From Paragordius varius (Eukaryota; Animalia; Nematomorpha): a stretch of DNA of 64,000 nucleotides. Below are positions 4,432-52,296 of this stretch, piece after piece. The stretch spans positions 3,224,001 through 3,288,000 of the forward strand of contig OZ176056.1 in NCBI GenBank assembly GCA_964247055.1, in the 5' to 3' direction. The notes beneath the pieces are model-generated. The model worked only from the letters and a program-made list of their open reading frames with translations, was not told where the DNA came from and did not search any database. Numbering within the stretch: position 1 is the first letter of the stretch; each line of letters opens with the position of its first letter. The translations under genes were made by a program, and so were the position numbers.

Positions 4432-6595
4432 TAAGGTGACCAGACGTCCCGCTTTTGGCGGGACAGTCCCACTTTTTCACACTTTGTCCCGCGTCCCGCT
4501 ACGTTTTTGAAATGTCCCGCTTTTTCACGATTATATAAAAAAACTTTCTTTTTAAATACATTTAAATTTCTTATAAATTTATTTTTTTATCCCTTTAAAT
4601 TTTTAATCATTCGTTATCTTTAAAATCTATATCAATTTTAAATTAAAATTTTTTATTTTAAAATTAAATATATTTATTTCTTTCAATTTATATCATATGG
4701 TTATACACTTTGCTACTCCTACTTCTACTGCCAACATTATCAAAAAAACAAATTAGTACGACAAATCGGTAGCTTATACGTATTCAGAAAATTAAGGTAA
4801 TACAATATTTATACTAATGTTAGTTTAAAAATATGAGCACAAAAAGAGTTTGTAAATTCAACGATAAATTAATGAAAGAATTTCTTTCTTAAAAAAACGT
4901 AGAATGAATCATTTATTAATGTTCTTTATGCGAGGGGGTATTTACCCTAGCACATGAAGGCAAGCATGATATTACAAAGCATATGGAAACACAGAAACAT
5001 ATAAAATGTTTAAATATGGCGGCATCATCTTACAAAAAAAGCGAATTCTAACGAAAAACCGCTTTTGGAGAGGAAGATAACAATTTGGCACTAGCCGAAG
5101 GCGTTTTATCTTTTAACGCCGTTAATCCCAATCATTCCTTTAGATCCAAAGATTGTACCTCACAGGTTAATCGTACCTTACTCAATAAAATTTACATGTG
5201 CCCGTACAAAGGCTGAAGCCATTGTATGAAATGTCCTTTCGCCACATGCATTTTCTGAAATACAAAAAGATTTGCTGAAAATTAATTTCATATCTCTATA
5301 CTCTGATGAATCAAATCACAAGGAAATAAAATTCTTTCCTTATAAATTAAAATTTTAGATTATATTTCTCTACCCGGTGAAAAGACATAATTTTTATTTC
5401 AATAATGAATATTCTAGAAAAAAATAATTTAATAGACAAAATAATCATCGCATATTGCGCTGACAACACTACGAACTTCGGTGGAAAAGCAAGGATAGGA
5501 ACAAAAAATATTTTGGCGTTAGGTGTGCAGCGCATATATGACACAATGCTATTCAAACAGCTAATGATTTGTTACGCTTAGATGTAAAAAACGTAGTTGT
5601 TATAATATATTCCTATTTTACGGTACGCGTTAAAACGCTTAAAGAATTCTGTAAAAATGCAGTGGTTAAATATCAAAAAATCTTGGATATTGTAAAACTC
5701 GTTGGTTATCTCTTTTGCCAGCTATCGAAAAATTTTTAAAATGTATGATCCCTTAAAATCCTATTTTTTATCACAGGACAAATGCCCTACAACTTTGGAT
5801 AGTTTTTGAAAGTGATCTTTCAAAATATTGTTAGAGTTCCTACATAATCAAGCTTTACTCTTTCAAAATGTTATTAAATTGAAAGGAGGTAACGAAATTT
5901 CGGCAATCGAAGTAGCCAATAAAGTTAATAACCTAAAATTCCAATGTCAAGAAAGGTTAGAAAATAATTTTATACCATTACCACCCAATATTAAAAATAA
6001 TTTAGAAAAACAAGGTTCCTGTATCATATAAAAATGTTTTATACAAACTGTATAGAATTGGAAGACTGGACGGTGCAATTCAATGAAATTGATCATTTAC
6101 ATTGGATAACATTAAAACCATAATTTAATTAGTGCGATGTTCAAAAATCATTTGATTACATCTGCATCTACCAAAAATTCCCAAAAATCTTTCAGAAAAT
6201 GATCTTTTTTCCGAACTATACTATGTTCCATACAATAATATTTTAAAAATTGTAAAATTCGCACTATCTTTAGCTAGAACCAACGCTGCTACTCAGCGCG
6301 TTTTTCCACAGTAAATTAGGTGTGACATCGGAAAAATTAAATTTAAATATAAAACTTTAAATATGAAGACTTCTACAAAATTTTAAAAAATGATGACAAT
6401 CTGCTAAAACGCATTCCCTCAAATAAAAAATATACCAAGGAATAAAATATGTTATATTTATAATGTATTTGTGTTAAAAAGAAATATTACAATAAATATT
6501 TTGTACAAAAATTTTTGGTTGTACCCCCCCCCCCATGTCCTCCCCCTTTTCTCGGATTTGTCCCGCTTTTTCCTTCAAAAAATCTGGTCACCTTA
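4432..6595 (+). mobile_element. hAT transposon (Blackjack-type termini), copy 1, defective
   Basis: TIR TAAGGTGACCAGA ... TCTGGTCACCTTA with subterminal GTCCCG motifs. Perfect 8-bp TSD GGCATGCT at 4424-4431 and 6596-6603. Internal decayed transposase. Confidence 0.92.
4833..6445 (+). pseudogene. hAT transposase remnant (copy 1)
   Basis: Colinear with 8015-9827 but has many stops, frameshifts and deletions. ORF-track fragment 5828-6031 (EFLHNQALLFQNVIKL...). Confidence 0.85.
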
Positions 6596-7741
6596 GGCAT
6601 GCTGCTTCTAGTTTTGCCTAAAATTTCTATAATTTTTGCTGATTGACCCATATAAAATATAGTTTATTTACCATCATTCTTAATTATAGATGCTCTATCC
6701 AAAAAATCTAATTTACGTTGCAAAACAAAATATTTGTTAATATTAATTTGGGTATTTTAAAACAGCTTCTGAAAAAACACAAAAAGGCCGAGATTGCAAT
6801 GCAAATCCCATAAATGACCTAAAAAGTATTTTTAGAAATTTTACTTGAAATTGAATTCAAATATGCGTGCTTGCAATATTTAAAATTGTATAAATTAAAT
6901 TCCAATGATTTTTGTGGAAAACGGAACTTATATTTAATTAAAATTTAATAAGGAACTGATTAAATAGAATTTTTAGCCTAACCAAATTATTATAGAATAA
7001 AATATTTCAATATTTTACAGTTGTACTTACCAAAAATTTTAAGGCCGCAAAAAATATCCATCTAGTCTAGTGTTATTGGATGCACCGTAAAATACCTATA
7101 AGAATTTCGAGGCTGTTGACAGATTTGCAGGGGCAAAAGCACTTAAGAGTTGCATGCGCCCCATGGTCCGTAGGTATCCAAACTCTAAATTCCATAAAAC
7201 TCATTTTAACAATTTTTAATGTATATGATAAATTATTTAAATAATTTTTGATTCATAACTAGCATATAATTTAAAAGTTATCACACAATCTGGGCGTTTA
7301 TTCGTTTATTTTAACAATACCTTCCATTTTAGAGAAGTCTAGAAATTTTAAACTTTGAGAGCCGTGTATGACTTAAAATTTTATCATAATATTCTTTTGC
7401 TTTCTAAATATACATATTATATACATTATATTGACAAATGAAGCTTCTATACAAATTTTTATTCAGCATAATGTTTATTTTTTTGCGGTTAACATAAGAT
7501 GACCAGACGTCCCGCTTTTGGCTGGACAGTCCCGTTTTTTAAACTTTGTCCCGCGTTCCGCTACGTTTTTGAAATGTCCCGCTTTTTCACGATTATAAAA
7601 AAAATTTTTTTTTATACAAATAAAAATTTTTTTACAAATAATTTTTTTTTATTTTAAATTAAAATTTTTTTATTTTTAAATTTAATATATATTTCGAATT
7701 TATATCATATGATTATACACTTTCCTTCCTACTACTACTGT

Positions 7742-8001
7742 CATTATTATGAAAAAGCCAAGTTACTAGATTAAAAGACAAATTGATACCACAAATCGGT
7801 ACCTTACACGTTTATTCCAGAAAATTAAGGTAATATAATATTTATTATACTAATATTTTAGTTTTATTACTTGCCAACATTATTAAAAAGCCAAATTAAT
7901 ACCACAAATCGGTAGCTTAAAAGACAAATTGATACCACAAATCGGTACCTTACACGTTTATTTCAGAAAATTAAGGTAACTTAATATTTATTATACTAAT
8001 A
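7742..8001 (+). repeat. ~125-bp imperfect tandem duplication in the 5' subterminal region of copy 2
   Basis: The block 'aaagacaaattgataccacaaatcggtaccttacacgtttatt..cagaaaattaaggtaa..aatatttattatactaata' occurs twice here and once in copy 3. Confidence 0.75.
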
Positions 8002-8014
8002 GTAGTTTATAAAT

Positions 8015-9827
8015 ATGAGCACAAAAAGAGGTTGTAAATTCAATGATGAATTAATGAAAGATTTTCCTTTTATTAAAAAAACGAAGAATGAATCATCTGT
8101 TAAATGTCTTATATGCGAGGGGGAAATCACCCTAGCACATGGCAGCAAACATGATACTACAAAGCATATGGAAACACAGAAACATAAAAAATGTTTAGAT
8201 ATGGCGGCATCATCTTATAAAATGAGCGATTTTTTTCGAAAAACCGCTTTTGGAGAGGAAGAAAAGAATTTGGCACTAGCTGAGGGCGTGTTATCCTTTC
8301 ACTCCGTTAATCACAAACATTCTTTTAGATCATGGATTGTACCTCACAGGTTATTCGCACGTTATCCCATAAAAAATTTACATGTGCTCGTACAAAGGCT
8401 GAAACCATTGTGTGCAATATCCTTTCGCCACATGCATTTTCTGAAATACAAAAAGATTTGATAAAAATTAATTTCTTTTCCTTATACTCTGATGCTTCAA
8501 AATGAAACAAAATATTTCCCACTTTGATAAGATATTCAGAAACCGGAGTAAAAATTAAAATTTTATTAATTTCCCTACCCGGTGAAAATTCCGAAATAAT
8601 ATTCAATAATGCATAAATAATTTAAAAGACAAAATTATCGCATATTGCGCTAACAACACCAATACGAACTTTGGTGAAGCAAGGAGGAAAACAAAAAATA
8701 TTTTTGATAAATTAACAGATAATCTTAATCAAAACATTATTGGCGTTGGGTGTGCAGCGCATATGATACACAACGCTATTCAAACAGCTGCTGATTTGTT
8801 ACCCCTAGATGTGGAAAATGTAGTTGTTAAAATATATTCCTATTTTTATATATACCGTACGTGTTGAACGCTTAAAGAATTTTGTGAAAATGCAGAAGTT
8901 CAATATCAAAAAATGCTTGGATATTGTAAAACTCGTTGGTTAGCTTTTATGCCAGCTATCGAAAGAATTTTAAAAATGTATGATCCTTTAAAATCTTTTT
9001 TTATCACAGCACAAATGTCCTACAACTTTAAAAAAAATTCAAAAATATGGTTAAAATTCTTACATAATCAAGCTTCTCTCTTTCAAAATGTTATTAAATT
9101 TATAGAAGGTGACAAAATTTCGGCAATCGAAGTAGCCAATGAAGTTAGTAACCTAAAATTCCAATGTCAAGAACGGTTAGAAAATAATTTTATACCATTA
9201 ATCATCCGCAATACAATAAATAATTTAGAAAAACAAGGCTTAATAAATCGCCAAGATATCCTGTACCATATAAAAATGTTTTATACAAACTGTAAAGATT
9301 ATTTGGAAGACTGGACGCAATATGAATTTGATCATTTTCATTGGATAACATTAAAATCAGAATTTAATTGGTGCGATGTTCAAAAATCATTTGATTATAT
9401 CTTCTCCCAAAAATTCTCAAAAAGTAACCTCTCAGAAAATGATCCTTTTTCTGAAGTATCCTTAGTTAAAAGATATATTATTAGTGAAAAACTTAAATTA
9501 TGGACAAAAGAAAAATAACAGTAGAAAAGAAATGGTTGAGAATATTTCATCATTTTGAAGCCAGCTATATTACATACAATAATTTTTTGAAAATTGTAGA
9601 ATTGGCACTATCTTTACCTGGAACCAACGCTGCTACTGAGCGCGTTTTTTTCCACAGTAAATCAGGCGGGACATTGGAAAAATCCAATTTAAATGTTGAA
9701 AATTTAAAGGCCGTCTTATCTGTCAAATATAATTTGACACCATCTTGTAAAGAATTTTCTACAATATTTAAAAAATGATGACACTCTGCTAAAACGCATT
9801 CGCTCAAAAAAATATACCAATGAATAA
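8015..9827 (+). pseudogene. Near-full-length frameshifted hAT transposase (BED finger, DDE core, C-terminal dimerisation region)
   Basis: ORFs 8015-8461 (CLICEGE..HG.K.D.TKHMETQKHKK, BED-like), 8913-9518 (YCKTRWLAFMPAIERIL) and 9500-9778 (LSLPGTNAATERVF) carry hAT motifs and are split by frameshifts. Confidence 0.9.
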
Positions 9828-9873
9828 AATATTTTCTTATATTTATAAAATTTTTATGTTAAAAAATGAACAA

Positions 9874-10689
9874 AATTACTTAAAATATTGTATAAGTCTT
9901 CATAATTTGTCAAATTATATTTGAACACATAAAATGGTTTTTATTCAACATTTAAATTTGATTCCGTGTCCTTACTTAATTTACTGTGGAAAAACGCGTT
10001 CAATAGCAGTGGTTCAGGTAAAGATAATGCAAATTCTACAATTAAAATATTATTGTATGGAACATAATTTGTTTAAAAATGTTTATTTTAACCATTTCTA
10101 TCCTACGTATTTTTTTCTGTTGTCCATAATATAAGTTTTCAATATATTTATTTAATAATGAGACTTCATAAAAAAGTGTCATTGTGCACCGTCTTGTGTT
10201 CCAAATAATCGTTTCTGTTTGTATAAAACATCTTTATATTCTGGCTATTCATTGAGCCTTGTTTTCTGGATGCTTTATAATATTGCGATTAGATAATGGT
10301 ATTCTAACCTTTTTCGACTTGGAATTTTGACCTTTGTCCTGTGAAATAGGATTCTAGGAGATCCATTTTTATAAATATTTCAATCGCTGGCAAAAGAGCT
10401 AACCAACAGTTCTACAATATCCAAGCATTTTAACATTTATATTTTCCACATCCAGGGGTAACAAATCAGTAGCTGTTTGAATAGCTTATGTATCTGCCAA
10501 TAATGTTTTGATTAAGATTATTCGCTAAATTGTTAAAAATATTTTTTGTGCCGCTTCTTGCATAACCCAGCGCACTTTGTGATGAATTCGTCTTTATTAC
10601 TTTTTTCTAGAATATTACAATCACTTCACCCTTTGTTCGTGCACATGTAAATTTATTGAATAAGGTACAAACAACCTGTGAGGTACAAA
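9874..10689 (-). repeat. Inverted, multiply deleted, diverged copy of the same hAT transposase inside copy 2
   Basis: Reverse-complement blocks match the forward transposase, for example 'tatgttccatacaataatatttt', 'ggatgtggaaaat', 'aatcttaatcaaaacattattggc' and 'ttgtacctcacaggtt...tttacatgtgcacgaacaaagg'. Confidence 0.85.
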
Positions 10690-10905
10690 TTTTTTTATAT
10701 TTACAATGTATTTGTGTTAAAAATAAATAAATATTACAATAAATTTTTTGTATAAAAATTTTTGGTTGTACCCCCTAACGGGCCCCCTTCTCAGATTTGT
10801 CCCGCTTTTTCCTTTAAAAAATCTGGTCTTAGGTTAACACAATGCAATTATTTATTAATGACGCATAAGGTAATTTAACACTTGGATACAACACACTCAT
10901 TTTAA

Positions 10906-35100: not shown

Positions 35101-36562
35101 TTTTAAATCATTTAATTGGAAAATTTATTTAATTTAATCTTATTTACTCAATCTTAACAATATCCAAGGTCGGAAAAATTTTATTTCTAAGCCCACGTTT
35201 TCTAACGATTTTTATTTTCTAACAATAAAATTCGATTCCGTGTTGGGATCCCTTTTCAATATTTTCCAATTTTTAAAAAAATGAATGAATACTAAACTAG
35301 ATTTTTAGAATTTTATTTCTATAAAGTATATATTATGCACCTATATACACAATTATCTTATTATATTAAATTTTCATAACAATATAAAAGATGAGGGATC
35401 TACTATGTAACTCAATCATATCAAATTACTTGCAATTAAATAATTACTTATGAAACACGCTATATTAAAAAACCTATTTTATTTCTATAAAAAATTACTT
35501 CAACCGTGTGAATAAAAAATATTATAAATAAAATAAATTATAGAAATTGACCTTAACATAAAAAACCACAATATGATTTTCTTTGTTTATATATTCGGAC
35601 AGTTGTTTTGCTTAAAAAACGTAAACGAAATTTTCTAAATAATAAATTATTTTAAATTGGATATTAACATATTGAAGATGATAAATACTTTTTTATTTAA
35701 TTAAAAAATCTTTTAATTATACATTTTTCTTTTAGTTTTTTAAAAAATATGCACAGCTAATAATATACATATTTATATATAGGCTAAAGTTTTTTATCAT
35801 ATAGTTTCAATTAATGTTTTTGTGTTTTAATACTTATAGAAATAAAGTATGGTTAAAACTATACAATGCATAAAAACGGATTAATTATTATATATAAAAA
35901 AATGTATGTAAGTATATATCTAATTTATAATGATAAAATAATTCTAAAATTCCAATTTTTATGTTAAGAAAAAAAATATGATTTCTGCATATTTTTATGT
36001 AGCTGTATAATTCTGCCGTTCATCAGTTTGTAAATGATTAATATTAAAAAAATGTAAAATTTGAAAAAAAAATTTTTTATAATTACAAACAATGTATTGA
36101 TATATGTTTATATATTTATAAATGTATTTAAATTACATTTTCATTATGCATTCATATATAACAATGGATATTGGAAAAAAGAATTATTTTTTTCGCTTTA
36201 TACTCTCTACCTAAAACTAAACCAATAATCATTTTCTGTGCTGTATTTTATAATTCTTATGTATAGGGAATTTTTTAGAAATATTTTTTATAACTAAGTT
36301 TTAATTTAAAAAAGCGCGTGAATTTGCGTTTTAAATCCTGTTCATAGACCACTACAAGGCTAAATTTTGTTTTCATTTCTTAAAACAAACAGAAAAAGTT
36401 GTTTTGTCCATACTTATTTAGATCATTATTATACAATAACTTTGTCGCCTTTTTTTGTATAGTTTAAAACATATACTTTTTATTTCGCTTATTGAGATTA
36501 CAACATTTTGATTTTATTTTTTCTTTGTTCTCTGCTCTATATTAATCAATGCTGTATTCTAG

Positions 36563-39500
36563 GAAATCGATTTTATCCACCATCACCAATACAACAATCT
36601 CCCACAGAATTTGAAGGCAAAAATAAACGCAAAAAAAATTCCAATCAAAATGACAAAAGCATCAGTAGTAATAATAAAAATCATTACTTTGATGATAGAA
36701 AAGATATTATCCATACCCAAAATAATTGTCTTTTGAACGAAACTTTAAATGGACATTCAGACGATGGATTGTCCAACACGCCACCAAGCTTAGATTTTTG
36801 TCATGATGAAGAAATAGTTATCCGGAGTTGTGATGTTAACCCTAAAAATTCTTACATACAAAACGCGCAAAATTGTTTAAAACCTACGTGTTCTACCCCT
36901 CCTTATAAATATTATTGTAATGGTATCGGTTCCCCCAAAAATGGAAATGTAAATGATTCTGGATTCGAAGAATCTATATATGTTCCTCAACAACACTCTG
37001 CCTCAAACGGTATTGAACAGTCCTTAAATAGCGAACTCCTAACAACAAACGATAAAATATCAAGGCCACAAAAAAGCATCTCCCCCATACCAATCCTTAC
37101 AAAGTATACGGAAAAGCCATTTAACCATGCATTCGATCCTTCATTCGAACCTATTAGAACAGGTAAATCAACTGATATTTCCGAAAATTGCATAACCACT
37201 TCCTCCAGTGATAAAACAGAAAATTCTTCCCTTAAAGATTGTTTGTTTGAGCTTGAGATTATAGAAAAGTCACCCGTCCCTTCATCATTAAACAGTAGTC
37301 CTGAACCGCCCTTTTTATTGTATACGGAAAGCGAAAGCAATTTTCTAAATCAGCCTTTTAAAACTTCAGGTATTCCAATTGTTTCAACTGAACAAGAACA
37401 TAAAAATTTTAGTTGTTCCAACAATATAGGACACCAGTTTGAAAACGAACAGGATTTAGTGATTCCAACTACTATAACCAAACAAACAAGTCTCCATATC
37501 TATGCTGATAAAGCTATAAGCAATGAAACATTTGAACAAGACGACACTCGTAGAGTTATAACTGATTCACAATTATCAAAACCAATTCCAGCTCGAATTC
37601 CATCAAACATTCAAGATTACCAAGTTGAAGTCTTGTCTGAAGCTACTTGCCATCTAATCTCACCCAAACAAGTTAAATGTATGTGTTTTTTTTTGTTTAT
37701 TGATTTAAATTTTAAAGGCCATTATAAGGTTTTTGTTGTAAAATATGTCATTTTAACTCAATATATATATTTATACTTATTATGCCGTTTATAGTTCAAC
37801 GAATTGATACCGAAACTTTGACACCCATAGAGGATCATTTAGTTGATGTTGATGATATTAATAATAATACTTCTACCTTTCCAATCTCGAACCCTGTTGG
37901 AGATAATAACTACTGTTCTCAATCAAACTCACCTATTTTTGATCAAAAAGGATCATCAAATCCTTTACACATAAAATCAACGTCTTTCGCTAAAGTCATA
38001 GCTATAGGACAAAATCCATTTTTAGCCTTGGCTCGGGCGACAGCACACGCTACCACCATTTCCTCGGCAAAAGCAACGTTTGAAACTATGAAAGTTTTAA
38101 ACTCTGAAACCAAAAATAATGAGGTGGTGTGCAATCAACCGAATGGTAGCCCAACAAAAAAACCTCCTGGAACAGTTATAACTGGACGACGCCTACCTAT
38201 CGCTGCTAAGAAGACCATTGTAAAACCTTTAGTCAAAACGAGCAGCAGCTTAAATGGTAATAGTACAATGACTAAATCGGTAAAAATGACATCACCGCTT
38301 AAAAATGGTACATGCAAAGAAACAAACGATTATAATACAATTGAGAAAAATAAAATTTCAGCCACAAAAAACGGTCATTGCGTACCCAAGAATGAAAAAA
38401 ATGGGGCGGCATCAAAAATAACGACAACTAAAAAAATGGATTTCGAAAATGCAGAAACTAAAATTCCTAAATCAAACCAAAATGGTTTAAAACATAAAAG
38501 CACTTCGAGCAAAATCTTGACAAATGACAATGTTTTTGCCGAATTATCCATCAAAGTTTCGGCTTCTTGTAAATTAAGATCATCACCTCATCATACCACC
38601 AGCCTTAAAAAAACTAATAATGGCAATCAAAACAATTCGCAACCTAAACAAAGTGATTATCAAACTAATAATATAGTTAAAGGTGTTAAAAATTCACAAA
38701 CTATACTAAGCCATGATTCAAAAAATGCACAAAATGAAAAAATCAATAATACTGTAATACAGTCACCATCAACTGGATTAGATACTATGGAAGCTATGAA
38801 CAAAAAGATAGTAACTGAAAATATTATAAAATCAACAGCTTCTATGCCAAAAATTCAAGGTTATGCTCAAGCAATTAAACATGCTCTCGATTTAACAACT
38901 TCTTCACAAGAGGCACAAAACAATGGCGAAACAACCATAATAAACGATCAAACTGATTTAGATAACATTGAACGTCCATCTAGTCGATCGGTAACATTAG
39001 TGTTTGAAGACGATTTTCAAGAAAATAGCACTCCTACCCTCAATAAAGATGATGATTCGATAAAAATACCCAAATTATATTTGATCAATGGGTCACCCCT
39101 GGAAAAAACGATTCAAGGCCTAAAAGAATCCGATGTTAATTACAGTCTCCATGCACAAAATGTTACGAATGAATCTTTAACTTCTTCGGTGACAAATGAA
39201 GCAAATATGGTTACAAGTCAATTGTCAGACATTATTGTGGTTGGTAATAAGAGCACTACACCCTTCCTAAAACCTATATTAGTTAATAGCGGTCATAATC
39301 ACTCCGTAAACTCTCAACAATCCCACGTTGAAAATCATAGCTTGCATTCTACTACTGATGATCAGGCTATTCAAAAAGCACCAACAATGGTTAAACCGGC
39401 AAAAAGAATAACATTATCTAATGATGTTATTGAACATGAAATACCGTATGAAGATAGAGCTGGTTCTTGGTTACCTGGACCGCCAGAATATGAAGATGAA

Positions 39501-42500
39501 TGTTCGGAATCGCCTATTCCTCAGTCATTAAAACAAGCGGAAGGTAGATTACTTGGTGTCAGAGGGAAAACATATGCACCTAACAAACTTTTGTATGAGA
39601 AGAAAGGATTGATTAATACCGCACCAAAATTAACAAAAACACAAATAATACTCCATGACAAGGGGAGAGATTTAGATTTAAATCATGAGAACAAGGCAAA
39701 GACATCACTAGAAATAGTGAAATCGAGCGCACTAACTAACAATACCAATATGATCAAAGAAACCATTATAAATAAAACAACAGCAGCTGTGTCGGAATCA
39801 AGGGATAATACGATCGTTCCTAAAAACGTATCAACAAATAACTATTGTCCCACCAAAGAAACTCAAAAAGGAGGATTTACAGGGAAAAAATGTCAAAATT
39901 ATGTCCTTAACACTAATGAAAAGCACAATACCACCCTTAACAACGAATCAAAACCGTTGAGTAATTCCATAGTTGTTTCTAAACCACCTCTACAGAAAGA
40001 AATGCATCCCATAGCTATAAATACATCAAATCAAACACAGCCAAGAATCTTGACTTCAACAATCAATCCATATGAGGCAATACTTAAAAATTCAGTTAAA
40101 TCCAATATGTCTTCTACACTCTCTAAAGTTAACTCAGTTTCTTTAACAATGGCAAAACTTGATCCAATTGATATAGATGGTATTCGTAATGAAAGAAAAA
40201 CCGTTAATCAAAAATACATGGATGATACATATTCAAGATGTCAAACACACTCAAAAGGTTTAAACAAAAAAATGAATATTTCCAATCTAAATAATTCGTT
40301 TGATTGTGGAGAGATGCGACAACCATCCCCTTCTCAAACATTAATTAAACGATTAAAACAAAAATATATCCAACACCATAATAATAATAAAATAGATAAT
40401 AATGGTTTATCAAAGAATAGAAGCGATACAACAAAACTTCTGATGAATACAACTTTGCCTATCATCCACGATTTTTCGAATCATTACGAAACCGCAAAAA
40501 CAGAAAAATTGGGCCACAGTTTACAATCCCATCCAGTTATCCACAATTTAATGTCCCGTTCCTTGTGTGATATCTCAAAAGAGGTTGATCCCCACGGTTC
40601 AATTAACCAAGATGAAAATTTTAATTCTATTACCGCACGTTTAAAGACTCAGGCATTGTTGGATACGGAATTCACAGATATCCTGAAGGAATCATTTCAA
40701 AAATTGCGGGGTCAAAATAACTCCAAAAAATTGTTTGCCAATATGACTGACCACCATTTTAACGTTATAACCGTACACGCCCCCAATATGACTGAGAAAA
40801 TGGACCAATGTAACAACGCATTTACATCCCATTACCCACTTAATACCATGAAAAAACGTTCAATGAGTTTGGGTAATGTAATTGGTCTCCTATCTACTGG
40901 TGGAACTAAAACTAAAGATGTTAAAGTAATAGCGACAAATTCTTCGGTTATAACTGGTTCAGGGCGGCTTGATACAAATAACCGGTTACTGACATCTGCT
41001 GTCACCTTAAATGACATGGAAATGGGTGAAGGTGTTGACTTACCGCTAAATACGCTGCAAAAGAGAGCTGGTAAATCCATCAATGATAGATCATCTACAA
41101 CGCTTTTGGGTACACATAGGGCTTTAACACTTCAAACTAATTTAGATGATATCCTGGCACAAATGTCGAAAGATAAAACCCCTGTCCACTTCAAAAGTTT
41201 GGGGAATTTAAATGATGATCAAAATGCCTCTAACTCCATTGATAAAAAGCATAAAAAAGATGTTAAAAGTTCCCATAGCTCACACTTTGCAAATGGTTTT
41301 GTTAACAATGGTTCGACAAACATAATAAACGAAAGTACAAAAGTCAATGATATGGCTCAACACATTTTACAAGCTACATCTAACCTAAACATCCCAAGAT
41401 GGTTATCTACACTATCTCTGGGCCCTGCTAAAACCAAAGATGACACGTATCATTTTAAAAGCCCTTTCAGACGTATAAATGAACGTGGTTACGAGCCTGG
41501 CGATTATAAACAACAACATCGCATTGATGATAGCATTGATATTGAAAGTAGTTTAAACACTAATTCATTTGATACAGCATCTGAATTCGCCCTAAGCCGG
41601 GAACATAAATTGGGACACTTTGAGAGAAATCAACAGGGGATTAGGTATACACTACCAACCCATTTGAGTTTACCAGATAGACTAAGGGATTATTCAAAGA
41701 CAGCACACGATGCAATAAATTTGCCAAGCGATAAAACAGACACCACAACAGAAAAGGATATCGATATCAACAATTTTAATATTGATACGAATGATTTGGT
41801 CAGTAGCGTTGATTTTTCCGTCGACACCAATGATTCCGAAAATATGGCAACTGGAAATTCGGAAACCAGGTCTAATACAAATACATCATCGTACAAAACT
41901 ACTGAAAGTCACGTATTATGTCCTACTGTCTACAACAAAGATTTGATCGAAGGTTCGCTAAATGAAACTACTGAAGGTACAAACATGGACAATATACCCG
42001 GTGATTCAAGTCAACAATCATTTATTTCATATGATGATTCTAGCCATCCTTCCGAAACAAATCATTATCAGAATTCGTCGTCTGATAAAAATTATAAAAA
42101 AATCATAAGTAGTAATGGTAGTACAACACATTCAATCGATTCCACCAACCAGGGTTTGGATTCAAAACTATTTTCCCTGGGTAAAAGCAAGTATAAACGC
42201 ATGAAAAATAAATCTAAACAACACAACGGTTCGGCTTCATTTAACCTAAAAACGCAAACTATTGTCAAACTTAATTCCATGGAACGACTTAATATACCCG
42301 TCTTAACAGATGAAGACATGCGTAGCAACTCTCATGATGGATCTCACAAAGGAAATGTTAAAAATTTGAGATCTTTGTTTGAAGAGAATAACTCGGATAC
42401 AAATAATTCAAGCAATCAAAAATTTTCAGCCTACAAAGCTATATGGAACAGGGCAAAAATTATAAGTCAACATTCATTTTCCAAAAAAGCGTATGAGAAA

Positions 42501-43214
42501 TCACCCAACCACCCTACTAATGCAAAACAAAATGGTAACGTAAACAATTTGAAAGTGGTGAATGAAAATTTAAATTTAAATGGTGAAACCGGCTCGACCG
42601 ATGATATGTTGTCACATTTAAAATGCCCTAGAGAACTTTACATATGTGAAGAATATATTGCTAAGAAAAACGATTCACTAAATTCGAGATCCTATACTAA
42701 TTCCGATGCACAGAAATCCCACAATAAAAGTAAAGAAGGAATTGAACAAAAAAATGAACCCAGTAATCAATATAATAATAATAATGTTTCCTCCTTAAAC
42801 ACAAGTGGTGTTACAGATTTAGATTACTCTTCAACTCATTGCCTTGATACCTCCTTCAAAATGAATGGAATGGTAGGTAATAATGAATCAACACACAATT
42901 CAACAGAAACTACTCATAAAAATAATCATAAAATTAACGGGATCGAAGCATATGATGAAAAAAATGATGCACCCTTTATAAATTATGAAAATGTTAATCA
43001 ATATCTCGCATTAAACACTATACACAATATTCCCAAGATTGAAAAGAATGAATCAACTGCAAACATAAACCATCATGGAATCTCAAATGATGCCTTTAAT
43101 AATCCAAAAACAAAAATGGATATCGAAACCAAACCAAAAATTATTAGTAAAACAGTTTATCTCAAAAACTCAAAAACATTGCTTGGGAAACCGCGGTTTG
43201 AAACAGCCGTTTAA
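36563..43214 (+). CDS. Last two exons of a very large, low-complexity (N/S/T/K-rich) protein with a C-terminal class I PDZ-binding motif
   Basis: ORFs 36508-37794 and 37782-43214 join in frame through a phase-1 intron at 37679-37794 (AAAT|GTATGT ... TTATAG|TTCAA). A phase-1 acceptor at 36562 implies unidentified upstream exons. Ends ...LGKPRFETAV*. Confidence 0.8.
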
Positions 43215-44381: not shown

Positions 44382-46170
44382 TTAATCAATAATTTTTGAC
44401 AAATTTGGTTTCCCCCCATGGCAGGCCAATCTTAATACGTCATCCATATGATTATTAAAATAAGCGATTTCTGTATGTATTCTTGATATCTTTCATTTTT
44501 GAATATGCCGTCTCACACGTGTAAGTTGATGGAAAAACAGCTAAGATAACTTGAGCCCATTTTTTAATATTTTCATATTTATTTGGCACAACTTGCCAAA
44601 ACTCTATATATCTTTCTTCTCTACGATTTTCCTTAAATATAGCTTCCAAATTGAAATCTTTTTTTAAAATCAACGAATTCTTCATATGATAAGCGCCCGA
44701 TCAAAACCAAAAAGCTCAAGTTGCTTAATGTTGGTTATATCCATATGCCATGGATTTTCAACGAGTTTTAAGCAATTTTTAATATTTTTTAATTCTTGAA
44801 ATCTGAATTTCATCTCATTAGAAAAATGTTAAATGATTGTCTATTATTAAATTAATTTCCGCGGTAAATTCCATATTTTCTTTATGAATCGTTTTAAGTG
44901 TTGGAAAATGTAGGAGTGTTTTATCTATAAAATTTTGTTTAGATAATATTAATTTTTCTTCAAAAGCAAATAAATGATTAGCAAATTGGGTTATTATTTT
45001 GCCCCCTTGAAGACTTGTATTAAAAGTACTAAGTTTATAAGTAATGTCGCAAAGGTAGACTAATAAAACCCACCAGTTGTCACTATTAATTTCCTCATCA
45101 AACTTTCTGTTATCTTTTATAAATAATAGAATTCATGTCTTAAATTAAAAAAACTATTTAAAACTTTGCTAAGGCTTAGCCATCTCACAGCGGTGTAAAA
45201 AAGATTATCATCAAACTCACTGTCGATATTTTTCAGAAGGTTTTTGAGTTCACGGCGATTGAATTCTTGCCACGGATGTGGTTAACTATATCCACAACTG
45301 TTTTGTTTACTAAATTTAGTGATTTTAAACGCGAAACCAAGTTTTGCTGATGAATAAAGCAGTGAAAGGATAATATATTTTCCAAATTATATTTGTTTTT
45401 TAAAAAAGGAATAAACCCTTTTTTTATTTCAATCATAGAGGGACAGCCATCTGTGCAGTTCGAAACCAATTTTTTCGTAGATATACCATTATTATCGAAA
45501 AAAGTGCTAATTAATTCATGAAAATCACTGCCTTTTGTGGTATTATTCATTTGTAAAAATTTCAATATTCCTCGTTGATTATGTTGGTTGCAAAATCTCA
45601 CGAAGAGCGCACATTATGGTGTTGAACTTATATCAGGACTAGAATCGATTGCAGTACTGAAGTATTTGCAGTTTTTCAGAGCCAATAATGTATTGTTAAA
45701 AATATATTTAGACATATCTTCAATGCGTCGAGCACATGTTGAATCAGAAAGTTGAAATTTTTTAATTTGCCTCAAGATTTGATTTTTATTAAATTTATTA
45801 AATAAAAAAATGCAACCATTTATAAGACATGCTTTTATTAGTTGGGAATCAGTAAACGGTTTCATATTTTTTCCTAAAATATACAAATTTCATACGAAGC
45901 TAATGTTACAGCTCCTGGGAAAAAGCTATGGCTATAGATTTTTCTTTCTCGTATAATTCCTTAAAATTTTTATTTTTCGTTTCTTTCCTTATGATTTTCT
46001 GGTAATTTATGAGAATGATGGATTTTAAAATGTCTTTCAATATTGTATTTTTTTATAATTATGTTGTCTTTGCTTATAAGGTAGGTAGCTTTGCTATTTA
46101 AACGACAAAAAATTATTTTCCCATAAAGGAGAGATTTTCATTGGATAATTACGATTTTTGGCATTAGTTG
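44382..46170 (-). pseudogene. Charlie/Buster-type (GTF2IRD2/EPM2AIP1-like) transposase remnant
   Basis: Fragments KPFTDSQLIKAC...QLSDSTCARRIEDMS (45614-45886), DGCPSM...SFHCFIHQQNL (45233-45601) and FPSTYTCETAYSKMKDIKNTYRNRL (44455-44685). Confidence 0.88.
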
Positions 46171-46669
46171 TCATCCTTTGGATTTATATTTAAATATTAT
46201 GTAAAAAACATAGGAACATAAATTAAATTATGAGTTATAAAAATGATGCAGGATAGCAATGAAATGTATAAGTAAGGTGACCAGACGTCCCGCTTTTTCA
46301 CACTTTGTCCCGCTTCCTGTTACGTTTTTAAATGTCCCGCTTTTTCACGATTATATTAAAAAAAATTTTTTTTAATACAAATAATTTTTTTTTGTCCGTT
46401 TATTTTATCATTAAATATCTTTAAAATCTATTCAATTTTAAATTAAAATCTTTTATTTTAAATTTAAAATATTTATTTTTTTCGAATTTATATCATGTGA
46501 TTATACACTATACTTCCTACTACTACTGTCATTATTATCAAAAAGCCAAGTTAATACCACAAATCTCTAGATTAAAAGACAAATTGATACCACAAATCGG
46601 TACCTTACACGTTTATCACAGAAAATTAAGGTAATATAATATTTATTATACTAATAGTAGTTTATAAAT

Positions 46670-47555
46670 ATGAGCGCAAAAAGAGGTTGTAAATTCAACG
46701 ATGAATTAATGAAGGATTTTCCTTTTATTAAAAAAACGAAGAATGAATCATTTGTTAAATGTCTTATATGCGAGGGGGAATTCACCCTAGCACATGGCGG
46801 CAAGTATGATATTACAAAGCATATGGAAATACAGAAACATAAAAAATGTTTAGATATGGGGGCATCATCTTACAAAATGAGCGATTTTTTTCGAAAAACC
46901 GCTTTTGGAGAGGAAGAAAAGAATTTGGCACTAGCTGAGGGCGTGTTATCTTTTCACGCCGTTAATCACAATCATTCCTTTAGATCTATGGACTGTACCT
47001 CACAGGTTATTCTCACGTTATTCCATAAAAAATTTACATGTGCCCGTACAAAGGCTGAAGCCATTGTGTGCAATGTCCTATCGCCACGTGCATTTTCTGA
47101 AATACAAAAAGATTTGCTGAAAATTAATTCCATATCGCTATACTCTGATGCATCAAATCACCATGAAACAAAATTATTTCCCACTTTGATGAGATATTTG
47201 ATTCAGAAACCGGAGTAAAAATTATAATTTTAGATTTAATTTCCCTACCCGGTGAAAATTCCGAAATAATATTTACTTCAATAATGCAAAAAAATAATTT
47301 AAAATACAAAATTATCGTATATTGCGATGACAACACCAATATGAACTTTGGTGGAAAAGCAAGGAGAGGAAAAAAAAATATTTTTCATAAATTAACAGAT
47401 AATCTTAATCAAAACATTATTGGCGTTGGGTGTGCAGCGCATATAATACACAACGCTATTCAAACAGCTGCTGATTTGTTACCACTAGATGTGGAAAATG
47501 TAGTTGTTAAAATATATTCCTATTTTTATATATACACGGTAGTGTTGAAACGCTT
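46670..47555 (+). pseudogene. 5' half of the hAT transposase (3'-truncated)
   Basis: ORFs 46670-47218 and 47284-47577 are homologous to 8015-8875. The sequence breaks at 'ttgaaacgctt'. Confidence 0.88.
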
Positions 47556-47826
47556 CTACAATATTCAAGCATTTTAACATCTATATTTTCCACATCCAGG
47601 GGTAACAAATCAGTAGCTGTTTGAACGTTGTGTATCTGCCAATAATGTTTTGATTAAGATTATTCGCTAAATTGTTAAAAATATTTTTGTGCCGCTTCTT
47701 GCATCACGCAGCGCACTTTGTGATGATTTCGTCTTTATTATTTTTTTCTAGAATATTAAAATCACTTCACCCTTTGTTCGTGCACATGGAAATTTATTGA
47801 ATAAGGTACAAACCTGTGAGGTACAA
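47556..47826 (-). repeat. Inverted transposase fragment shared with copy 2
   Basis: Nearly identical to ~10411-10689 and reverse-complementary to blocks at ~46991-47060, 47374-47425 and 47445-47512. Confidence 0.88.
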
Positions 47827-49439
47827 ATTTTTTTATATTTATAATGTATATGTGTTAAAAATAAATAAATATTACAATAAATTTTTTGTATAAAAATTTT
47901 TGGTTGTACCCCCCAATGACCCACCCCCTTCTCAGATTTGTCCCGCTTTTTCCTTCAAAAAATCTGGTCACCTTATGTATAAGCAATGGGTAAAAACAAA
48001 AAAGAAATGCAATAAAAAATTCAAAAAGAAAAGAAAATAGAATACAGAAAAAGTAACAACGTGTGCCATAAATCATCAATTTTAAAATCATTTTAATGTA
48101 GGAAAATTTTTCTACATTTCAAATTGGGTAAAAAATAAATATTATCAATAAAAAAATTTAAATATCAATATGGTCATAGGGTAATTTTGAAGCACACTTT
48201 GGGCCGCATGCGGTCCGCGGGCCGCGATTTGAGTATCACTGCTCTAAATCCCTAATAATATCGACAAAGTCGATGACGTGTGATAGGCAACAGTTAGTAT
48301 GTTTTATTATTAATTTTAAAAATGCATTTTCTCCTTCGAGACTATTATTAAAATGGAAAATATCATTTAGCCAATGTTTGGTTAGTTTAAAATAGCCAAT
48401 ATTTTGCATCAATCAGATCAATAGATGGAAAATTTAAAATAAAACCATAAGTTATTACAGACTTTAAAATCTTTCAAACAGTTCCGACCGTTAAATGTAA
48501 TAAGTTAATTCGGAAAGACCTCACGATAAATATCGCAACATAAAAATTATCCTACCTCTCTTGTTTATGCCTTACTGTAAAAATTCGGCAGCTTAGAGTA
48601 GCTATAATAAATTATGTACTATAAAAGATTTCTAAATTAGCAGTAAAAGCCAAAAGATCATGACAATTTTCTAAAATTAATAAAAAATGGTGTTTTTCAC
48701 GGAATTTCGAATATATTTTAATCATATTTTTAAATTATGTTTGTTAAAGTATGCATATATTTTCCCCAACTTTGATACTTTAATGCTGCCTATTTCAAGT
48801 GAAATTCAGGTAGCCAAACAATATAAAAATCAAAGTGTTTTTATGACATTTTTATAAAGAACACCGGCAGTAGAACCGAACCTATTGTTTTTTGACAAAA
48901 ATTTCCGGAATTTAGCTCGCAATTTTTATTCTGTATCAATAGAGTTGGTTTGATGTCTGAGAAGGTAAACAAACGCTTTATTTTTAGTTGGCATTACATT
49001 ATCAAAACTATTGATATTAATAGATAATAACGCTTATGAATAAATCAATGAGATAGCTAATTAATTTTAAATGCATCCTATATTTTTATATGTCAATTCT
49101 TTATCCATTTATCAAAAAACCCAAAAACGTTCAGTAGTTAAAAACTAAAAATTACAATTTCAAATATTAATATTTTTATGATGCATATAGAAGCCACAGA
49201 ATCATATTTTGGTTATATGTTTTAATTTGGGTGAATATCTGCCCCTAAAGCGGGAAGAAACCAAATACGCCACAATTTATCTAAATTTTTAAAATTTATT
49301 GTTAACCCCAATTTAAAGACAAGAACATACAATTTAACTGATTATACCTTTAACATTTGCATTATATACCTGGGTTTTTAAATTTTTGAGTTATTTTTAA
49401 TTATTAATAATTCATACATTGTATCATATTACGACTTGC

Positions 49440-52296
49440 ATGTTGCCGGTCGGCCGAAAACAGATATTTAATTTGTGCATTTTGCCAAAGAGGTTTGCCA
49501 ATTAATTTATGTTTTAGAACGGCTTTTTACTACAACTATACTGGTAAAAAGGAAGATGAATTTCCTTGGCGCATAGCTGATGATTATCCATCAAAAACGA
49601 AAGTTGGCCCTGAACGTGACCTAGTAAATTTTCCGCGACTCAATCAAAATACTTATCCTCCTTTAACTCGATTAAATTTTTTACCGAATAGATGGTTTGA
49701 ATTTTTTTATCCAAAAACCGGAGTAACTGGTATATATTTATAATCGAATATAAAATTATTCAAATGTAACGCAAGAAATATTTTTAAACTAAACAGCCAT
49801 ACTTTCTAAACCTTAATTTTATTAAATGTATTGTTTTTTGTAACATACCGAATAGAGATTTAAATTGGTTAGACCCTCATTATAGTTTATATTGCAATCA
49901 TTTTGATTAAATAAAAATTAAGGAAATTATGTTTACAAAAGTTGTCTATAAGTTGATAGGTTTTGTCTTACTGTTTATATTTTTATTTTCCTCTCATAAC
50001 AGTAGATAACTTTTGACTTTTTAAGTGGCGCATAAACATAAAAAGTCAAATTATACAAAATTCTTAGGTGGAATTATAATTTTTATTTCAGAATTACTGT
50101 TAGAATGATAGTAAATACCAGAAAATGCAAGAAAACTCGGGTGGCAGAAATTTTTGTTGTCCACCAGTGTAATGCATACATAAAATCTACATTTTGTCTT
50201 TATATTATCTTAGGACCTTACCTGTTTTTGGGCGGGTTAGTTACAACGCTTTTGCAAAAAGAAATATGGGTTGTTGAGGCAGAATTCCTGGGAGGAACGA
50301 TTATGTTCCTAACCATATTTGGTTTTATGAAAAAATATGGAAACACCTTGAAAGAATATTATGCTAAGCAAGTCCAGGTTTTTATCCACAATTTTTACCC
50401 TCATTTATTTGTTTAATTAATAATGTTTAAAACAGGATACAAAATTATATGGTACTCTTTTTACTGTACGATTTATGGATTTTCTATTTTTAAATTTTAC
50501 ATTGAATTTACCCAATTAGACAAAATTTGAAGAATTTCTAAAAAATTGAAAGTTTTAAAGATACATATAATTTATATTTATTTCTATAAATTATTACTGA
50601 CATGTTTGAATATTCGGTGAATATAAAATTATTGTATAAATATACATTATTTTTTTCGAATAATTATATTATAGGATGATATAAAGGAAGCACAGGCCAT
50701 ACACCAAAAACATATTGATTACTACAAGGAACACATTGAAATCGAGAAAGTTAAGCAACGTGAATCCCAAGCCCCCAAATATATAGCTGAATTTCAAAGG
50801 GTAAATAATTATTTAAAAGAAAATTCTTTTTTTGATTTGAATCGCAAAGTTTAATACAGAGGTCTAAAGTCCCGTGAAAAATTTAAGAAGAACTAACATA
50901 ATCTAGACAATTTACGTTAACAAATTATTGTTGAATTGTTTCTTCCATATTTTGGTAGCGAACTAGCAAATATTGGTGGTATAAATAGCAGATATATTGA
51001 CTTTGTTAACAGTTTTCGGTTTGAAATCTAATTAAAAATTTTATTTATGCCAAAAATACATTTTTTGAATGCCTTCGCCCGGTTTTTTGAGTAAAAAATG
51101 CGTCCGGCGAAGAAATACGTGTAGGAAATCTTTGGTTTAAATGTAATAATTTATAAATTTAATACCTAAATGTAATGGTTTATAATTTAACGACAAAAAT
51201 ATCTAATTGATAATGTTGAAATTTAGACTTCTACTTTAATAACCCGTATTCAAAATCGTATCTCCTCGCTATGTAAGAAATTAAGTAAGTCGTGGTTTAA
51301 AAACTCGTATTATACATATTTTACGCTAGTTTTTTTTTTATAAGATTTCTGTATTTTTTGTAGGATAATGTGGCATTACAACAAGAAGCCTTGTATAGAG
51401 AACGACTGCTTGAATTATACCAATCTGTGAAAAAGCGTTTGGTAAAAATATTTTTACGATAAATTTTTTGAAAGTTATTTAGCAAAAATTTGATTTATAT
51501 CTTTCAAAATGATATTACAGTAAAAATTGAAATTATACGGGCAAAACGTATAAATATAAAGACAAATATTTTTTTTAAAGACAACCATATTTTTGAATCT
51601 TAAAAAATATAAAATAGACATGTAAATTGGTAGCCCAATTAATTTATATAGTATACGATTGTAATTAAATGCTTTAATAGAAATTAAGGTTTGATAAAGT
51701 ATCATTGTCTTTTAGAAAAAAAAATTGTCTTTACATTTTTACGTTTTGTCCGTATTTCGAATTTTTACTGTATAAAACTCATTTTATACATAATCTAATG
51801 CAACCATAAAATAAAGGTTATAATTAAAGGTATAATAATTGATTTTTTAATGTATAAAATAATTAAACATTTTGGCGGAAAAATTATTAATATTAAGACG
51901 TTAATTAGATGATTGCTTTAGATATTCATCTCAATTTTTTTAAATTTAAATTTTACAAACCCTCCCTAAATATTTTTATTTGTATTTAAATAAAATAAAA
52001 AAAATGTTTTTAAAATTGAGTTTTATATATTTATTATTTTTTTTAATGTCAAAGGATTACCGTGTTGAATTGGCTAATATACGGAGAAAATACGAACATG
52101 AAAATATGATTGATTGGATTATCCAACAAGTCTATAAGAGTATTACGCCTCAATTGGTATTATAAAAAAATTTTTTTCAAACAAAAAAAAAGATTTTTAT
52201 AATATTTCTATGAAAAATATTATTGTATAGCAAAAAGAAGCCCTTCAAAAATGCATTGTGGATCTAAAGCATTTATCAAAAACGGCACAGATATGA
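49440..52296 (+). CDS. ATP5PB: Mitochondrial ATP synthase Fo subunit b
   Basis: Exons 49440-49492 (tentative), 49518-49729, 50214-50377, 50675-50800, 51364-51441, 52055-52156, 52231-52296. Motifs [61 protein letters not shown] and QKCIVDLK. Confidence 0.95.
51516..51772. mobile_element. Tc1/mariner-type MITE in ATP5PB intron
   Basis: TA-CAGTAAAAATTGAAATTATACGG ... CCGTATTTCGAATTTTTACTG-TA. Confidence 0.85.

Follow-up and report, generated by a model that had tools for sequence, protein, structure and literature searches.

A compact hAT element with a strong predicted hairpin in Paragordius varius is probably a single Ds-like deletion derivative of an abundant, module-bearing subfamily

Inverted duplications of transposon sequence, as found at Mu killer and Ac killer 1, give rise to dsRNA, siRNAs and heritable silencing (PMC3440606; 10.1101/2020.01.07.897926; PMC13635294). 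Mu killer (Muk) of maize resembles the element described here, since part of a transposase gene is present there as an inverted duplication from which a long hairpin RNA can be formed (PMC3440606). Muk is, however, a single immobile locus that is read through from a flanking gene, and for which siRNAs and heritable silencing have been demonstrated, whereas the inverted repeat in this study lies inside TIR-bounded elements and is present in >200 copies, with arms that are ~87% identical. In maize, Ac killer 1 and the composite insertions that alternative transposition of Ac/Ds produces are also of hAT origin, and transcription of their inverted duplications yields dsRNA and siRNAs by which Ac is repressed (10.1101/2020.01.07.897926; PMC13635294), but these are locus-bound rearrangements from alternative transposition with re-replication, without TIRs and TSDs of their own as mobile units. 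The hpRNA loci of the Drosophila endo-siRNA pathway similarly hold a long inverted repeat in one transcript that is predicted to fold back, with arms often derived from the target gene (PMC10317233); these are host loci defined by Dicer-2-dependent small RNAs, in contrast to the transposon derivative described here. The Ds-type derivatives of Ac/Ds, and also those of hobo and the P-element, are alike in that the ends, TIRs and 8-bp TSD are kept while the interior has been deleted and the junction shows short microhomology, and in being non-autonomous, with several independent derivatives of different breakpoints coexisting in the present genome as well. They are unlike it in that the parent here already holds an inverted partial copy of its own gene, so that the deletion leaves a sense/antisense stem-loop.

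The element, termed copy 3, occupies positions 46273–47975 of the window, which is the whole 64,000-nucleotide stretch of Paragordius varius DNA that was analyzed; its features are given for the forward strand. Copy 3 is an element of hAT type, 1703 bp in length, whose 13-bp TIRs are perfect and which has an 8-bp TSD of its own; the perfect TIRs and the separate TSD had been noted in the preliminary description. The 5′ TIR (TAAGGTGACCAGA, 46273–46285) has its exact reverse complement in the 3′ TIR (TCTGGTCACCTTA, 47963–47975), and the TSD TGTATAAG stands at 46265–46272 on the left and again at 47976–47983 on the right, fitting the target preference nnYATRnn of the family, for which 35 distinct perfect 8-bp TSDs were found among the sampled copies. 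The 5′ subterminal/untranslated region (46286–46669) is 97% identical to positions 1–388 of the nearest full-length relative (G000:C6:3988915-3992334, used below as the reference), and a repeat search placed within it two GTCCCGCTTTTTC motifs (46287–46301 and 46334–46348) and a 33-bp tandem pair (46541–46606). A segment of ~123 bp is present as a single unit in copy 3, against a tandem duplication in most full-length copies. The 3′ subterminal region (47827–47962) carries a further GTCCCGCTTTTTC motif at 47940–47954 and aligns with the 3′ ends of copies 1 and 2, described below.

The TIRs of hAT elements are short and have a YARNG-type terminus, and the TAAGG at the ends of copy 3 fits this rule. 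The family is assigned to the hAT superfamily on the basis of the 8-bp TSD, this terminus, and the Dimer_Tnp_hAT domain (PF05699) predicted in the full-length relative P0001, a protein of 626 aa that is 63% identical over the core and passed the Pfam threshold at 25.5 bits, as did a second full-length relative, P0004, at 31.2 bits. The C-terminal piece of copy 2 scored 18.2 bits for the same domain, under the 21.4 cut-off, and this region is gone from copy 3; the N-terminal ORF of copy 2 gave a sub-threshold Pfam match to zf-C2H2_2 at 18.3 bits. With respect to an RNase-H-like DDE core, a 220-aa core piece had no Pfam or PDB sequence match. Language-model neighbors of P0001 were FAM200/ZBED5/GTF2IRD2-type hAT clusters, which is a lead only.

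Two sense fragments of the transposase gene remain in copy 3. The first (46670–47218) is a 182-aa ORF covering residues ~8–180 of the ~626-aa hAT transposase, with a C2H2/BED-like zinc finger (54% identity to P0001 by tblastn), and the second (47197–47553) is frame-shifted and covers residues ~181–305, in the catalytic core with a GCAAH motif, up to the deletion junction (58% identity by tblastn); the ORF listing places a 97-aa ORF at 47284–47577 in this part. With residues ~8–305 of ~626 left and a frameshift near residue 180, coding capacity has been lost, which bears out the earlier view that copy 3 is not coding-competent. The fragments are followed by the retained part of the inverted, antisense transposase module (47554–47826), which is the reverse complement of sense-gene segments and 99.5% identical to reference positions 2999–3270. 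An intact transposase gene was not found among 150 scored matches or 20 recovered elements of the family, in which the longest open frame was 443 aa, against ~626 expected.

The inverted module is not rare, but is the standard architecture of the main subfamily, class A. Members of this class are 3.3–3.45 kb long and contain, in order, the 5′ TIR, the transposase gene in sense orientation, a diverged, condensed copy of this gene in antisense (~810 bp), and the 3′ end, with a ~65-bp 3′ segment duplicated so that it flanks the module on both sides. A module-specific 32-mer, chosen as conserved in 29/29 sampled module loci, had 211 matches (≤3 mismatches) in the 110-Mb genome, against about 357–394 element ends (357 matches to a 36-nt 3′-end pattern, 394 to a 21-nt 5′-end pattern), in counts that miss diverged copies and for which 40–150 candidates were scored per search. 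A 29-mer over the module/3′ junction was dropped as a census pattern in favor of the 32-mer, giving only 4 matches because an indel polymorphism (ACAAACCTG vs. ACAAACAACCTG) divides the family. Full-length module-bearing copies were recovered 17 times, each with a different perfect 8-bp TSD, and so the structure, previously suggested to have transposed at least twice and to represent a subfamily, has done so far more often than twice. The best 40 module matches, copy 3 among them, are 94–100% identical, and the other 39 begin exactly at the copy-3 junction position 47554. Class-A copies diverge from their consensus by ~1–6%, copy 3 by 1.4%. When 18 class-A copies are combined into a majority consensus, their sense ORF consists of five overlapping open segments in different frames, but a frame-shifted master is not claimed, since a 220-aa ORF in one real copy reads through two of these shifts.

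Copy 2 (7495–10831, plus strand; TSD GGTTAACA) is an older full-length, module-bearing class-A element with 96% identity to the class-A consensus, whose 3′ TIR lacks ACC and whose 5′ TIR has one mismatch. Copy 1 (4432–6595, plus strand; TSD GGCATGCT) is a decayed, module-free element of class-B type. As their TSDs differ from each other and from TGTATAAG, the three copies are independent insertions. Copy 3 aligns with copy 2 over 46534–47555 (7879–8873, 91.6%) and 47554–47969 (10410–10828, 93.6%), leaving ~1536 bp of copy 2 (8874–10409) absent, so that the inverted fragment and the module/3′-end junction are common to both, and the loss of ~1.5 kb noted at first sight is upheld. The reference is a closer match still, at 97–98% over positions 1–1430 and 99.5% over 2999–3420; copy 3 is colinear with this longer family member at both ends, with a single internal gap in which 1568 bp of the reference are gone. 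Mapped on it, the deletion junction lies at 47552–47555, where parent positions 1431–2998 are missing and there is 2-bp microhomology (TT).

Taken together, these results make copy 3 a probable Ds-like derivative that arose a single time, by internal deletion, from an abundant hAT DNA transposon. The module may have one origin, no later than the divergence of class A and the module-free class B, and its probable cause would be an error of replication or repair in which the strand folded back and the template was switched twice; the same error would have left the post-stop 3′ region directly duplicated (~65 bp) on both sides of the module. The module would then have been carried passively while the subfamily amplified to >200 copies, until a young class-A copy (1.4% from consensus) lost parent 1431–2998, whether before, during or after landing at the TGTATAAG site. 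The 2-bp microhomology agrees with gap repair that follows excision and is interrupted, and also with end joining. The deletion would have taken the middle of a pre-existing long imperfect palindrome, its base being left as the compact stem-loop.

Other deletion derivatives of the family exist, with different breakpoints (L062, L064, L070, L072, L073 and C3:1903762-1905046), in a census of breakpoints consisting of ~40 recovered elements plus coordinate pairs. The TSD of one of these, L064, is identical to that of copy 3 by coincidence, the flanks being unrelated. The compact form itself carries two private markers, the 29-nt junction at 47543–47571 and a 32-mer at 47692–47723 with an exact match in copy 3 only. 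A search of the 110-Mb genome for further copies with the 29-nt junction (≤3 mismatches) returned one occurrence, copy 3 itself, and there is thus no evidence that the compact form propagates or that it has amplified as a MITE-like subfamily of its own. The suggestion that the compact hairpin is a mobile, spreading unit is not sustained by this single copy. Single-copy status is no proof that the compact form never transposed, however, as cut-and-paste elements move without gaining copies, and with its ends intact copy 3 could be moved by transposase supplied in trans.

A variant of this explanation, differing only in the mechanism of deletion, is that, in the course of replication or repair, the long inverted repeat inside the element folded into a hairpin or cruciform whose center the cell removed, with copy 3 as the stabilized survivor and the near-symmetry of its breakpoints as causal and not coincidental. 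The breakpoints are nearly symmetric, with the left at parent 1430 and the hairpin partner of the right at ~1488, a distance of ~58 nt for which a crude estimate of the accidental chance is ~8%; this is a hint of a possible role for the palindrome itself in guiding the deletion, and the junction microhomology of just 2 bp is a further point in favor. The breakpoints of other class-A derivatives are nevertheless asymmetric (981>2576, 1129>2507, 729>2875, 987>1636, 482>1236), and arms at 87% identity with indels would be poor cruciform formers. On contigs C1–C3, furthermore, 28 of 32 pairs of 5′ end and module are at full-length spacing, showing that large deletions are rare, and the palindrome, retained in full by these copies, has no notable instability. 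Guidance of the deletion by the palindrome is therefore considered possible, though doubtful.

The stem-loop that was left behind is strong in prediction. The sense arm of the inner stem (47374–47513) and its antisense arm (47571–47688) consist of two inverted repeats, one of 55 nt (47459–47513/47571–47625, 91% complementary, 57 nt between the arms) and one of 51 nt (47374–47424/47638–47688, 88%), and the MFE structure pairs 47359–47513 with 47571–47702. The 57-nt loop (47514–47570) is made up of ~40 nt of sense sequence and ~17 nt of the antisense module that lost their sense counterpart to the deletion. An outer, weaker stem joins 46994–47060 to 47765–47825 (~79%; 79–80% by blastn), and is paired in the MFE structure of 46950–47850. 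Folding energies are far beyond chance, at −155.2 kcal/mol for 47359–47702, compared to −65.4 ± 5.7 for shuffled sequences (z −15.8), and −284.3 against −169.6 for 46950–47850 (z −15.6), the latter being the interval that the preliminary description had proposed for folding. Two helices, of 28 and 25 bp, are the longest without interruption, and the inner stems have one exact run of 26 nt. An imperfect hairpin of 2.4 kb is, on the other hand, already predicted for the full-length parent (−837 kcal/mol vs. −450 for shuffles), and copy 2 folds in a like manner (−800 vs. −440), so that the deletion in copy 3 merely trimmed the parental hairpin. The earlier statement that the deletion leaves stems around a loop of ~60 nt thus stands with regard to the stems and the loop, but the hairpin was not created by the deletion. 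A scan of 46000–48300 against Rfam gave far sub-threshold matches to long-hairpin miRNA precursor models (e.g., MIR4208, 49.9 bits vs. a gathering threshold of 140), a generic hairpin resemblance that was set aside.

If transcribed, the RNA of copy 3 would be expected to fold into this hairpin, and transcription from its own 5′ region or by read-through would give an imperfect hairpin RNA of ~140 bp + 67 bp. The arms are old and imperfect. Counting substitutions only, they are 86.9% identical, with many indels besides; identity is 87.1% between the module and the sense gene of class B, compared to 94.1% between the class-A and class-B sense genes. Antisense 21-mers that perfectly match the sense consensus ORF number 6/253 (2.4%), rising to 18% with up to 2 mismatches, and there is an exact match of 26–28 nt to the sense gene of most sampled copies. 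A hairpin RNA of this kind could be diced, but probably as an incidental by-product inherited from the parent, and not as a specially evolved silencer.

The opposite view is that copy 3 is a mobile hairpin silencer, in which the compact element is transcribed, its RNA folds, the Dicer/piRNA machinery makes small RNAs against the transposase mRNA, and the whole spreads by its TIRs together with the family that it represses. The very strong predicted hairpin (z about −16), the 28- and 25-bp helices, the 26–28-nt exact match, and the intact TIRs, subterminal regions, 5′ region and start codon would all suit such a role, and the immobile loci Mu killer and Ac killer 1 offer a precedent. Against this, the unique junction indicates no amplification, the arms are diverged with few exact 21-mers, and the parent, with a longer hairpin, still reached at least 211 copies; accumulation to >200 copies with the module aboard argues against strong self-silencing. 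As no open frame exceeds 443 aa among the matches and elements scored, there is possibly nothing left to silence. A silencer role for copy 3 therefore appears unlikely and is not favored. It is quite improbable, for the same family, that the class-A subfamily as a whole is a naturally mobile “killer,” in which each TIR-bounded copy would carry a hairpin against its own transposase and the spread would have seeded family-wide small-RNA silencing, with copy 3 as the minimal version (promoter, stem-loop and ends).

Truncated P-element (KP) proteins repress by competing with full-length transposase, and the 182-aa N-terminal ORF could conceivably act likewise, its zinc-finger DNA-binding part binding subterminal sites. 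The ORF is open with its original ATG, covers residues ~8–180 and has a Cx2C…Hx4H motif, and its equivalent in copy 2 has the weak zf-C2H2 Pfam match, but N-terminal fragments of this kind are encoded by chance in many decayed copies (e.g., 148 aa in copy 2) and the frameshift that follows residue 180 has the look of ordinary decay, making a protein repressor very improbable. Segmental duplication, which the preliminary description had named as what would undo its reading, or an assembly artifact has nothing in its favor beyond the similarity of copy 3 to copy 2. This alternative has next to no probability and was ruled out by flank comparison, as the TSDs and flanks of copy 3 are unlike those of copies 1 and 2; copy 3 is also nearer to a copy on another contig (98–99.5%) than to copy 2 (92–94%).

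To our knowledge, there are few known cases of the first recognition of DNA transposons for silencing, Mu killer and Ac killer, both being immobile loci, and a hairpin-bearing element with working ends would be a mobile version of the same idea. If the killer reading were true, copy 3 could serve as a small natural model, from an animal, of a transposon suppressor that propagates itself; this prospect is lowered by the single copy, the inherited and imperfect hairpin, and the wide spread of the family despite the module. The copy-specific markers (the unique junction and the unique 32-mer) make a test at the RNA level straightforward. The same architecture will recur in many windows of this genome, where it represents one family and not many discoveries. 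Class A, of which copy 3 is a deletion derivative, is a clean and dated case in which the dominant subfamily of a genome descends from a rearranged hAT master that had an inverted duplication built in.

Copy 3, the compact hairpin element at 46273-47975 (1703 bp, TSD TGTATAAG), is an ordinary Ds-type internal-deletion derivative of a hAT element, and works alike. It belongs to one DNA-transposon family with copy 1 (4432-6595, 2164 bp, TSD GGCATGCT) and copy 2 (7495-10831, 3337 bp, TSD GGTTAACA), all three of which carry TAAGGTGACCAGA, exact or with one mismatch, at the start and its reverse complement at the end. The terminal inverted repeats (TIRs, 13 bp) and the 8-bp target-site duplication (TSD) of copy 3 are perfect, and its own, as the preliminary description stated. 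The ∼1.5 kb said to be missing relative to copy 2 amounts to ∼1.54 kb by alignment, with 46534-47555 corresponding to 7879-8873 (91.6% identity) and 47554-47969 to 10410-10828 (93.6%). Copy 3 is indeed not coding-competent, as only residues ∼8-305 of the ∼626-aa transposase are left, with a frameshift near residue 180. Copy 2 has one mismatch in its 5′ TIR (7495-7507, TAAGATG) and is without three bases in its 3′ TIR (10820-10831, TCTGGTC---TTA vs. TCTGGTCACCTTA); it is an older copy that can probably no longer be mobilised.

The family is hAT, as evidenced through its TSDs, its terminus, a domain match in copy 2 and full-length relatives. The TSDs are 8 bp long, with 35 distinct ones in the sample and a preference for nnYATRnn, and the terminus is TAAGG. 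Copy 2 gives a weak match to the hAT dimerisation domain. An exhaustive HMMER search for full-length relatives returned 1970 matches in all, the best being P0001 (626 aa, 63% identical), which passes the Pfam threshold for Dimer_Tnp_hAT together with a second relative, P0004. In a language-model comparison, P0001 neighbours hAT clusters of the FAM200/ZBED5/GTF2IRD2 type, which serve as a lead only. The target preference is palindromic, with T/C-A-T-A/G at TSD positions 3-6 across the 35 sampled insertions. TSDs often begin with TGTAT, and the TSD shared by the sampled copy L064 and copy 3 is therefore a coincidence.

In the eukaryotic assembly (110.6 Mb, 44 contigs, G+C ∼20-35%), of which the window is G000:C7:3224001-3288000, copy 3 as query found dozens of copies matching its positions 1-1283. 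With the module (an inverted, partial piece of the transposase gene lying before the 3′ end) and the 3′ end as query (47527-47975), the best 40 matches were scored, copy 3 among them; the other 39 are 94-100% identical, and all begin at query position 28-31, the copy 3 junction. Genome pattern counts, which are not limited by scoring, gave 394 matches to the 5′ end, 357 to the 3′ end and 211 to a module-specific 32-mer, and 17 full-length module-bearing elements (class A; 3262-3443 bp), ∼1-2% (substitutions) from their own consensus, were pieced together from loci that overlap. Their TSDs are all perfect and all different, so the module-bearing subfamily proposed previously has indeed transposed. 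By these counts and recoveries, class A is not a rare form but the predominant one in the family. Class B, in which the module is absent, is 2.3-2.9 kb long, lies ∼8-9% from the class-A consensus and is older; its sense gene is joined directly to the 3′ end, an arrangement also seen in copy 1. Three class-B elements of 2379-2380 bp at different sites (L066, G000:C1:4757344-4759722; L067, C3:806094-808473; L068, C3:7551744-7554123) may form a small sub-lineage without the module that has amplified.

Counting substitutions only, the sense and antisense arms are 86.9% identical, the module and the class-B sense gene 87.1%, and the class-A and class-B sense genes 94.1%. Deletions have shrunk the antisense arm to ∼810 bp from ∼1.5 kb of gene. 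A ∼65-bp stretch of the 3′ region behind the stop is directly duplicated on either side of the module (class-A consensus ∼2440-2494 and 3306-3372; 9831-9895 and 10690-10750 in copy 2). The two align with a score of 61, and 300 shuffles gave at most 53. Both align to the single class-B sequence; the one behind the sense gene has diverged, and the one behind the module is well kept. This flanking duplication suggests that the module originated through two template switches. A single fold-back event of this kind would date from around the divergence of classes A and B; since then the antisense arm would have changed at the neutral rate and the sense gene less rapidly, and the arms would already have been ∼10% or more apart by the recent burst.

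The stems described for copy 3 are present as three sense/antisense pairs, namely 47459-47513/47571-47625 (55 nt, 91%, spacer 57 nt) and 47374-47424/47638-47688 (51 nt, 88%) as inner stems and 46994-47060/47765-47825 (∼79%) as the outer stem. The predicted RNA fold of 47359-47702 has −155.2 kcal/mol, compared with −65.4 ± 5.7 in dinucleotide shuffles (z −15.8), and that of 46950-47850 (901 nt), the check proposed earlier, −284.3 compared with −169.6 (z −15.6), including helices that run unbroken for 28 and 25 bp. Rfam gave only far-sub-threshold, generic hairpin matches in the copy 3 region. The hairpin was not, however, made by the deletion. The 2.4-kb sense/antisense region of the full-length parent already folds at −837 kcal/mol (−450 in shuffles) and that of copy 2 at −800 (−440), per nucleotide slightly more strongly than copy 3, and thus the hairpin is inherited; what the deletion removed was the middle of a long, imperfect palindrome that was already there, leaving the base in place.

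The nearest relative of copy 3, G000:C6:3988915-3992334, is 97-98% identical over its positions 1-1430 and 99.5% over 2999-3420. Most class-A copies carry a tandemly duplicated ∼123-bp 5′ untranslated segment (266-388 and 412-531 in this relative; 7525-7855/7879-8000 in the window). Copy 3 and a minority (e.g., C2:3796966-3800257, C3:7107918-7111200, C5:12769745-12773043) have a single unit; the 5′ part of copy 3 is thus a single-unit variant, while the closest match to its 3′ module is a copy with two units. The deletion junction has 2 bp (TT) of microhomology, as is usual where a cut-and-paste element has undergone end joining or an interrupted gap repair. A 29-mer over the 47553/47554 junction, allowing up to three mismatches, occurs once in 110 Mb, so the compact form did not amplify. 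Since hAT transposition need not add copies, the deletion may have come before or after insertion. Full-length spacing is found in 28 of 32 pairs of 5′ end and module match among the listed coordinates on contigs C1-C3. Other class-A deletion derivatives have different breakpoints (981>2576, 1129>2507, 729>2875, 987>1636 and 482>1236 in parent coordinates), and none retains much of both arms. The near-symmetric breakpoints of copy 3, with the partner of the right one ∼58 nt from the left one (chance ∼8%, a crude estimate), may hint that the hairpin guided the deletion. A strong influence of this kind is disfavoured, since the other derivatives have asymmetric breakpoints and the palindrome is in general stable. 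One 1285-bp derivative (C3:1903762-1905046, TSD ATTATGGA) appears, from end coordinates and a partly read outer copy, to be nested in an opposite-orientation copy (G000:C3:1903064-1907720).

Copy 3 lies ∼3 kb downstream of an uninterrupted, low-complexity, Ser/Asn/Thr-rich 1810-aa ORF without a Pfam match (37782-43214, + strand), likely to be a single giant exon of a host gene, which is preceded by a 428-aa ORF (36508-37794). Just upstream of copy 3, two adjoining ORF fragments of 122 and 90 aa (45233-45886, − strand), also without a Pfam match, may be remnants of another transposon. An exon-like ORF resembling mitochondrial ATP synthase subunit b (B chain; 50105-50416, + strand; PF05405, 23.7 bits, above cut-off) begins ∼2 kb downstream.

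The structure first noticed is real and the interpretation given with it is partly supported, although a silencer role is not favoured. A putative hairpin RNA could silence the family through its two unbroken helices and a stretch of 26-28 nt that is identical in most of the sense genes sampled, and the 5′ region and start codon of copy 3 are intact. However, of 253 antisense 21-mers, only 6 are exact matches to the class-A sense consensus (10% match with ≤1 mismatch, 18% with ≤2), and the module was aboard while >200 copies built up. Also against silencing, no open frame exceeds 443 aa, compared with ∼626 expected, in the 20 recovered elements or the 150 scored of 1586 candidate transposase matches. 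An inverted duplication of transposase sequence is also found in Mu killer (PMC3440606) and in the Ac killer composite insertions (10.1101/2020.01.07.897926; PMC13635294), which are defined by a hairpin transcript, siRNAs and trans-repression; in copy 3 the hairpin RNA is a predicted one, and the similarity of its arms is marginal. Unlike in those systems, the inverted duplication of copy 3 lies inside a TIR-bounded unit.
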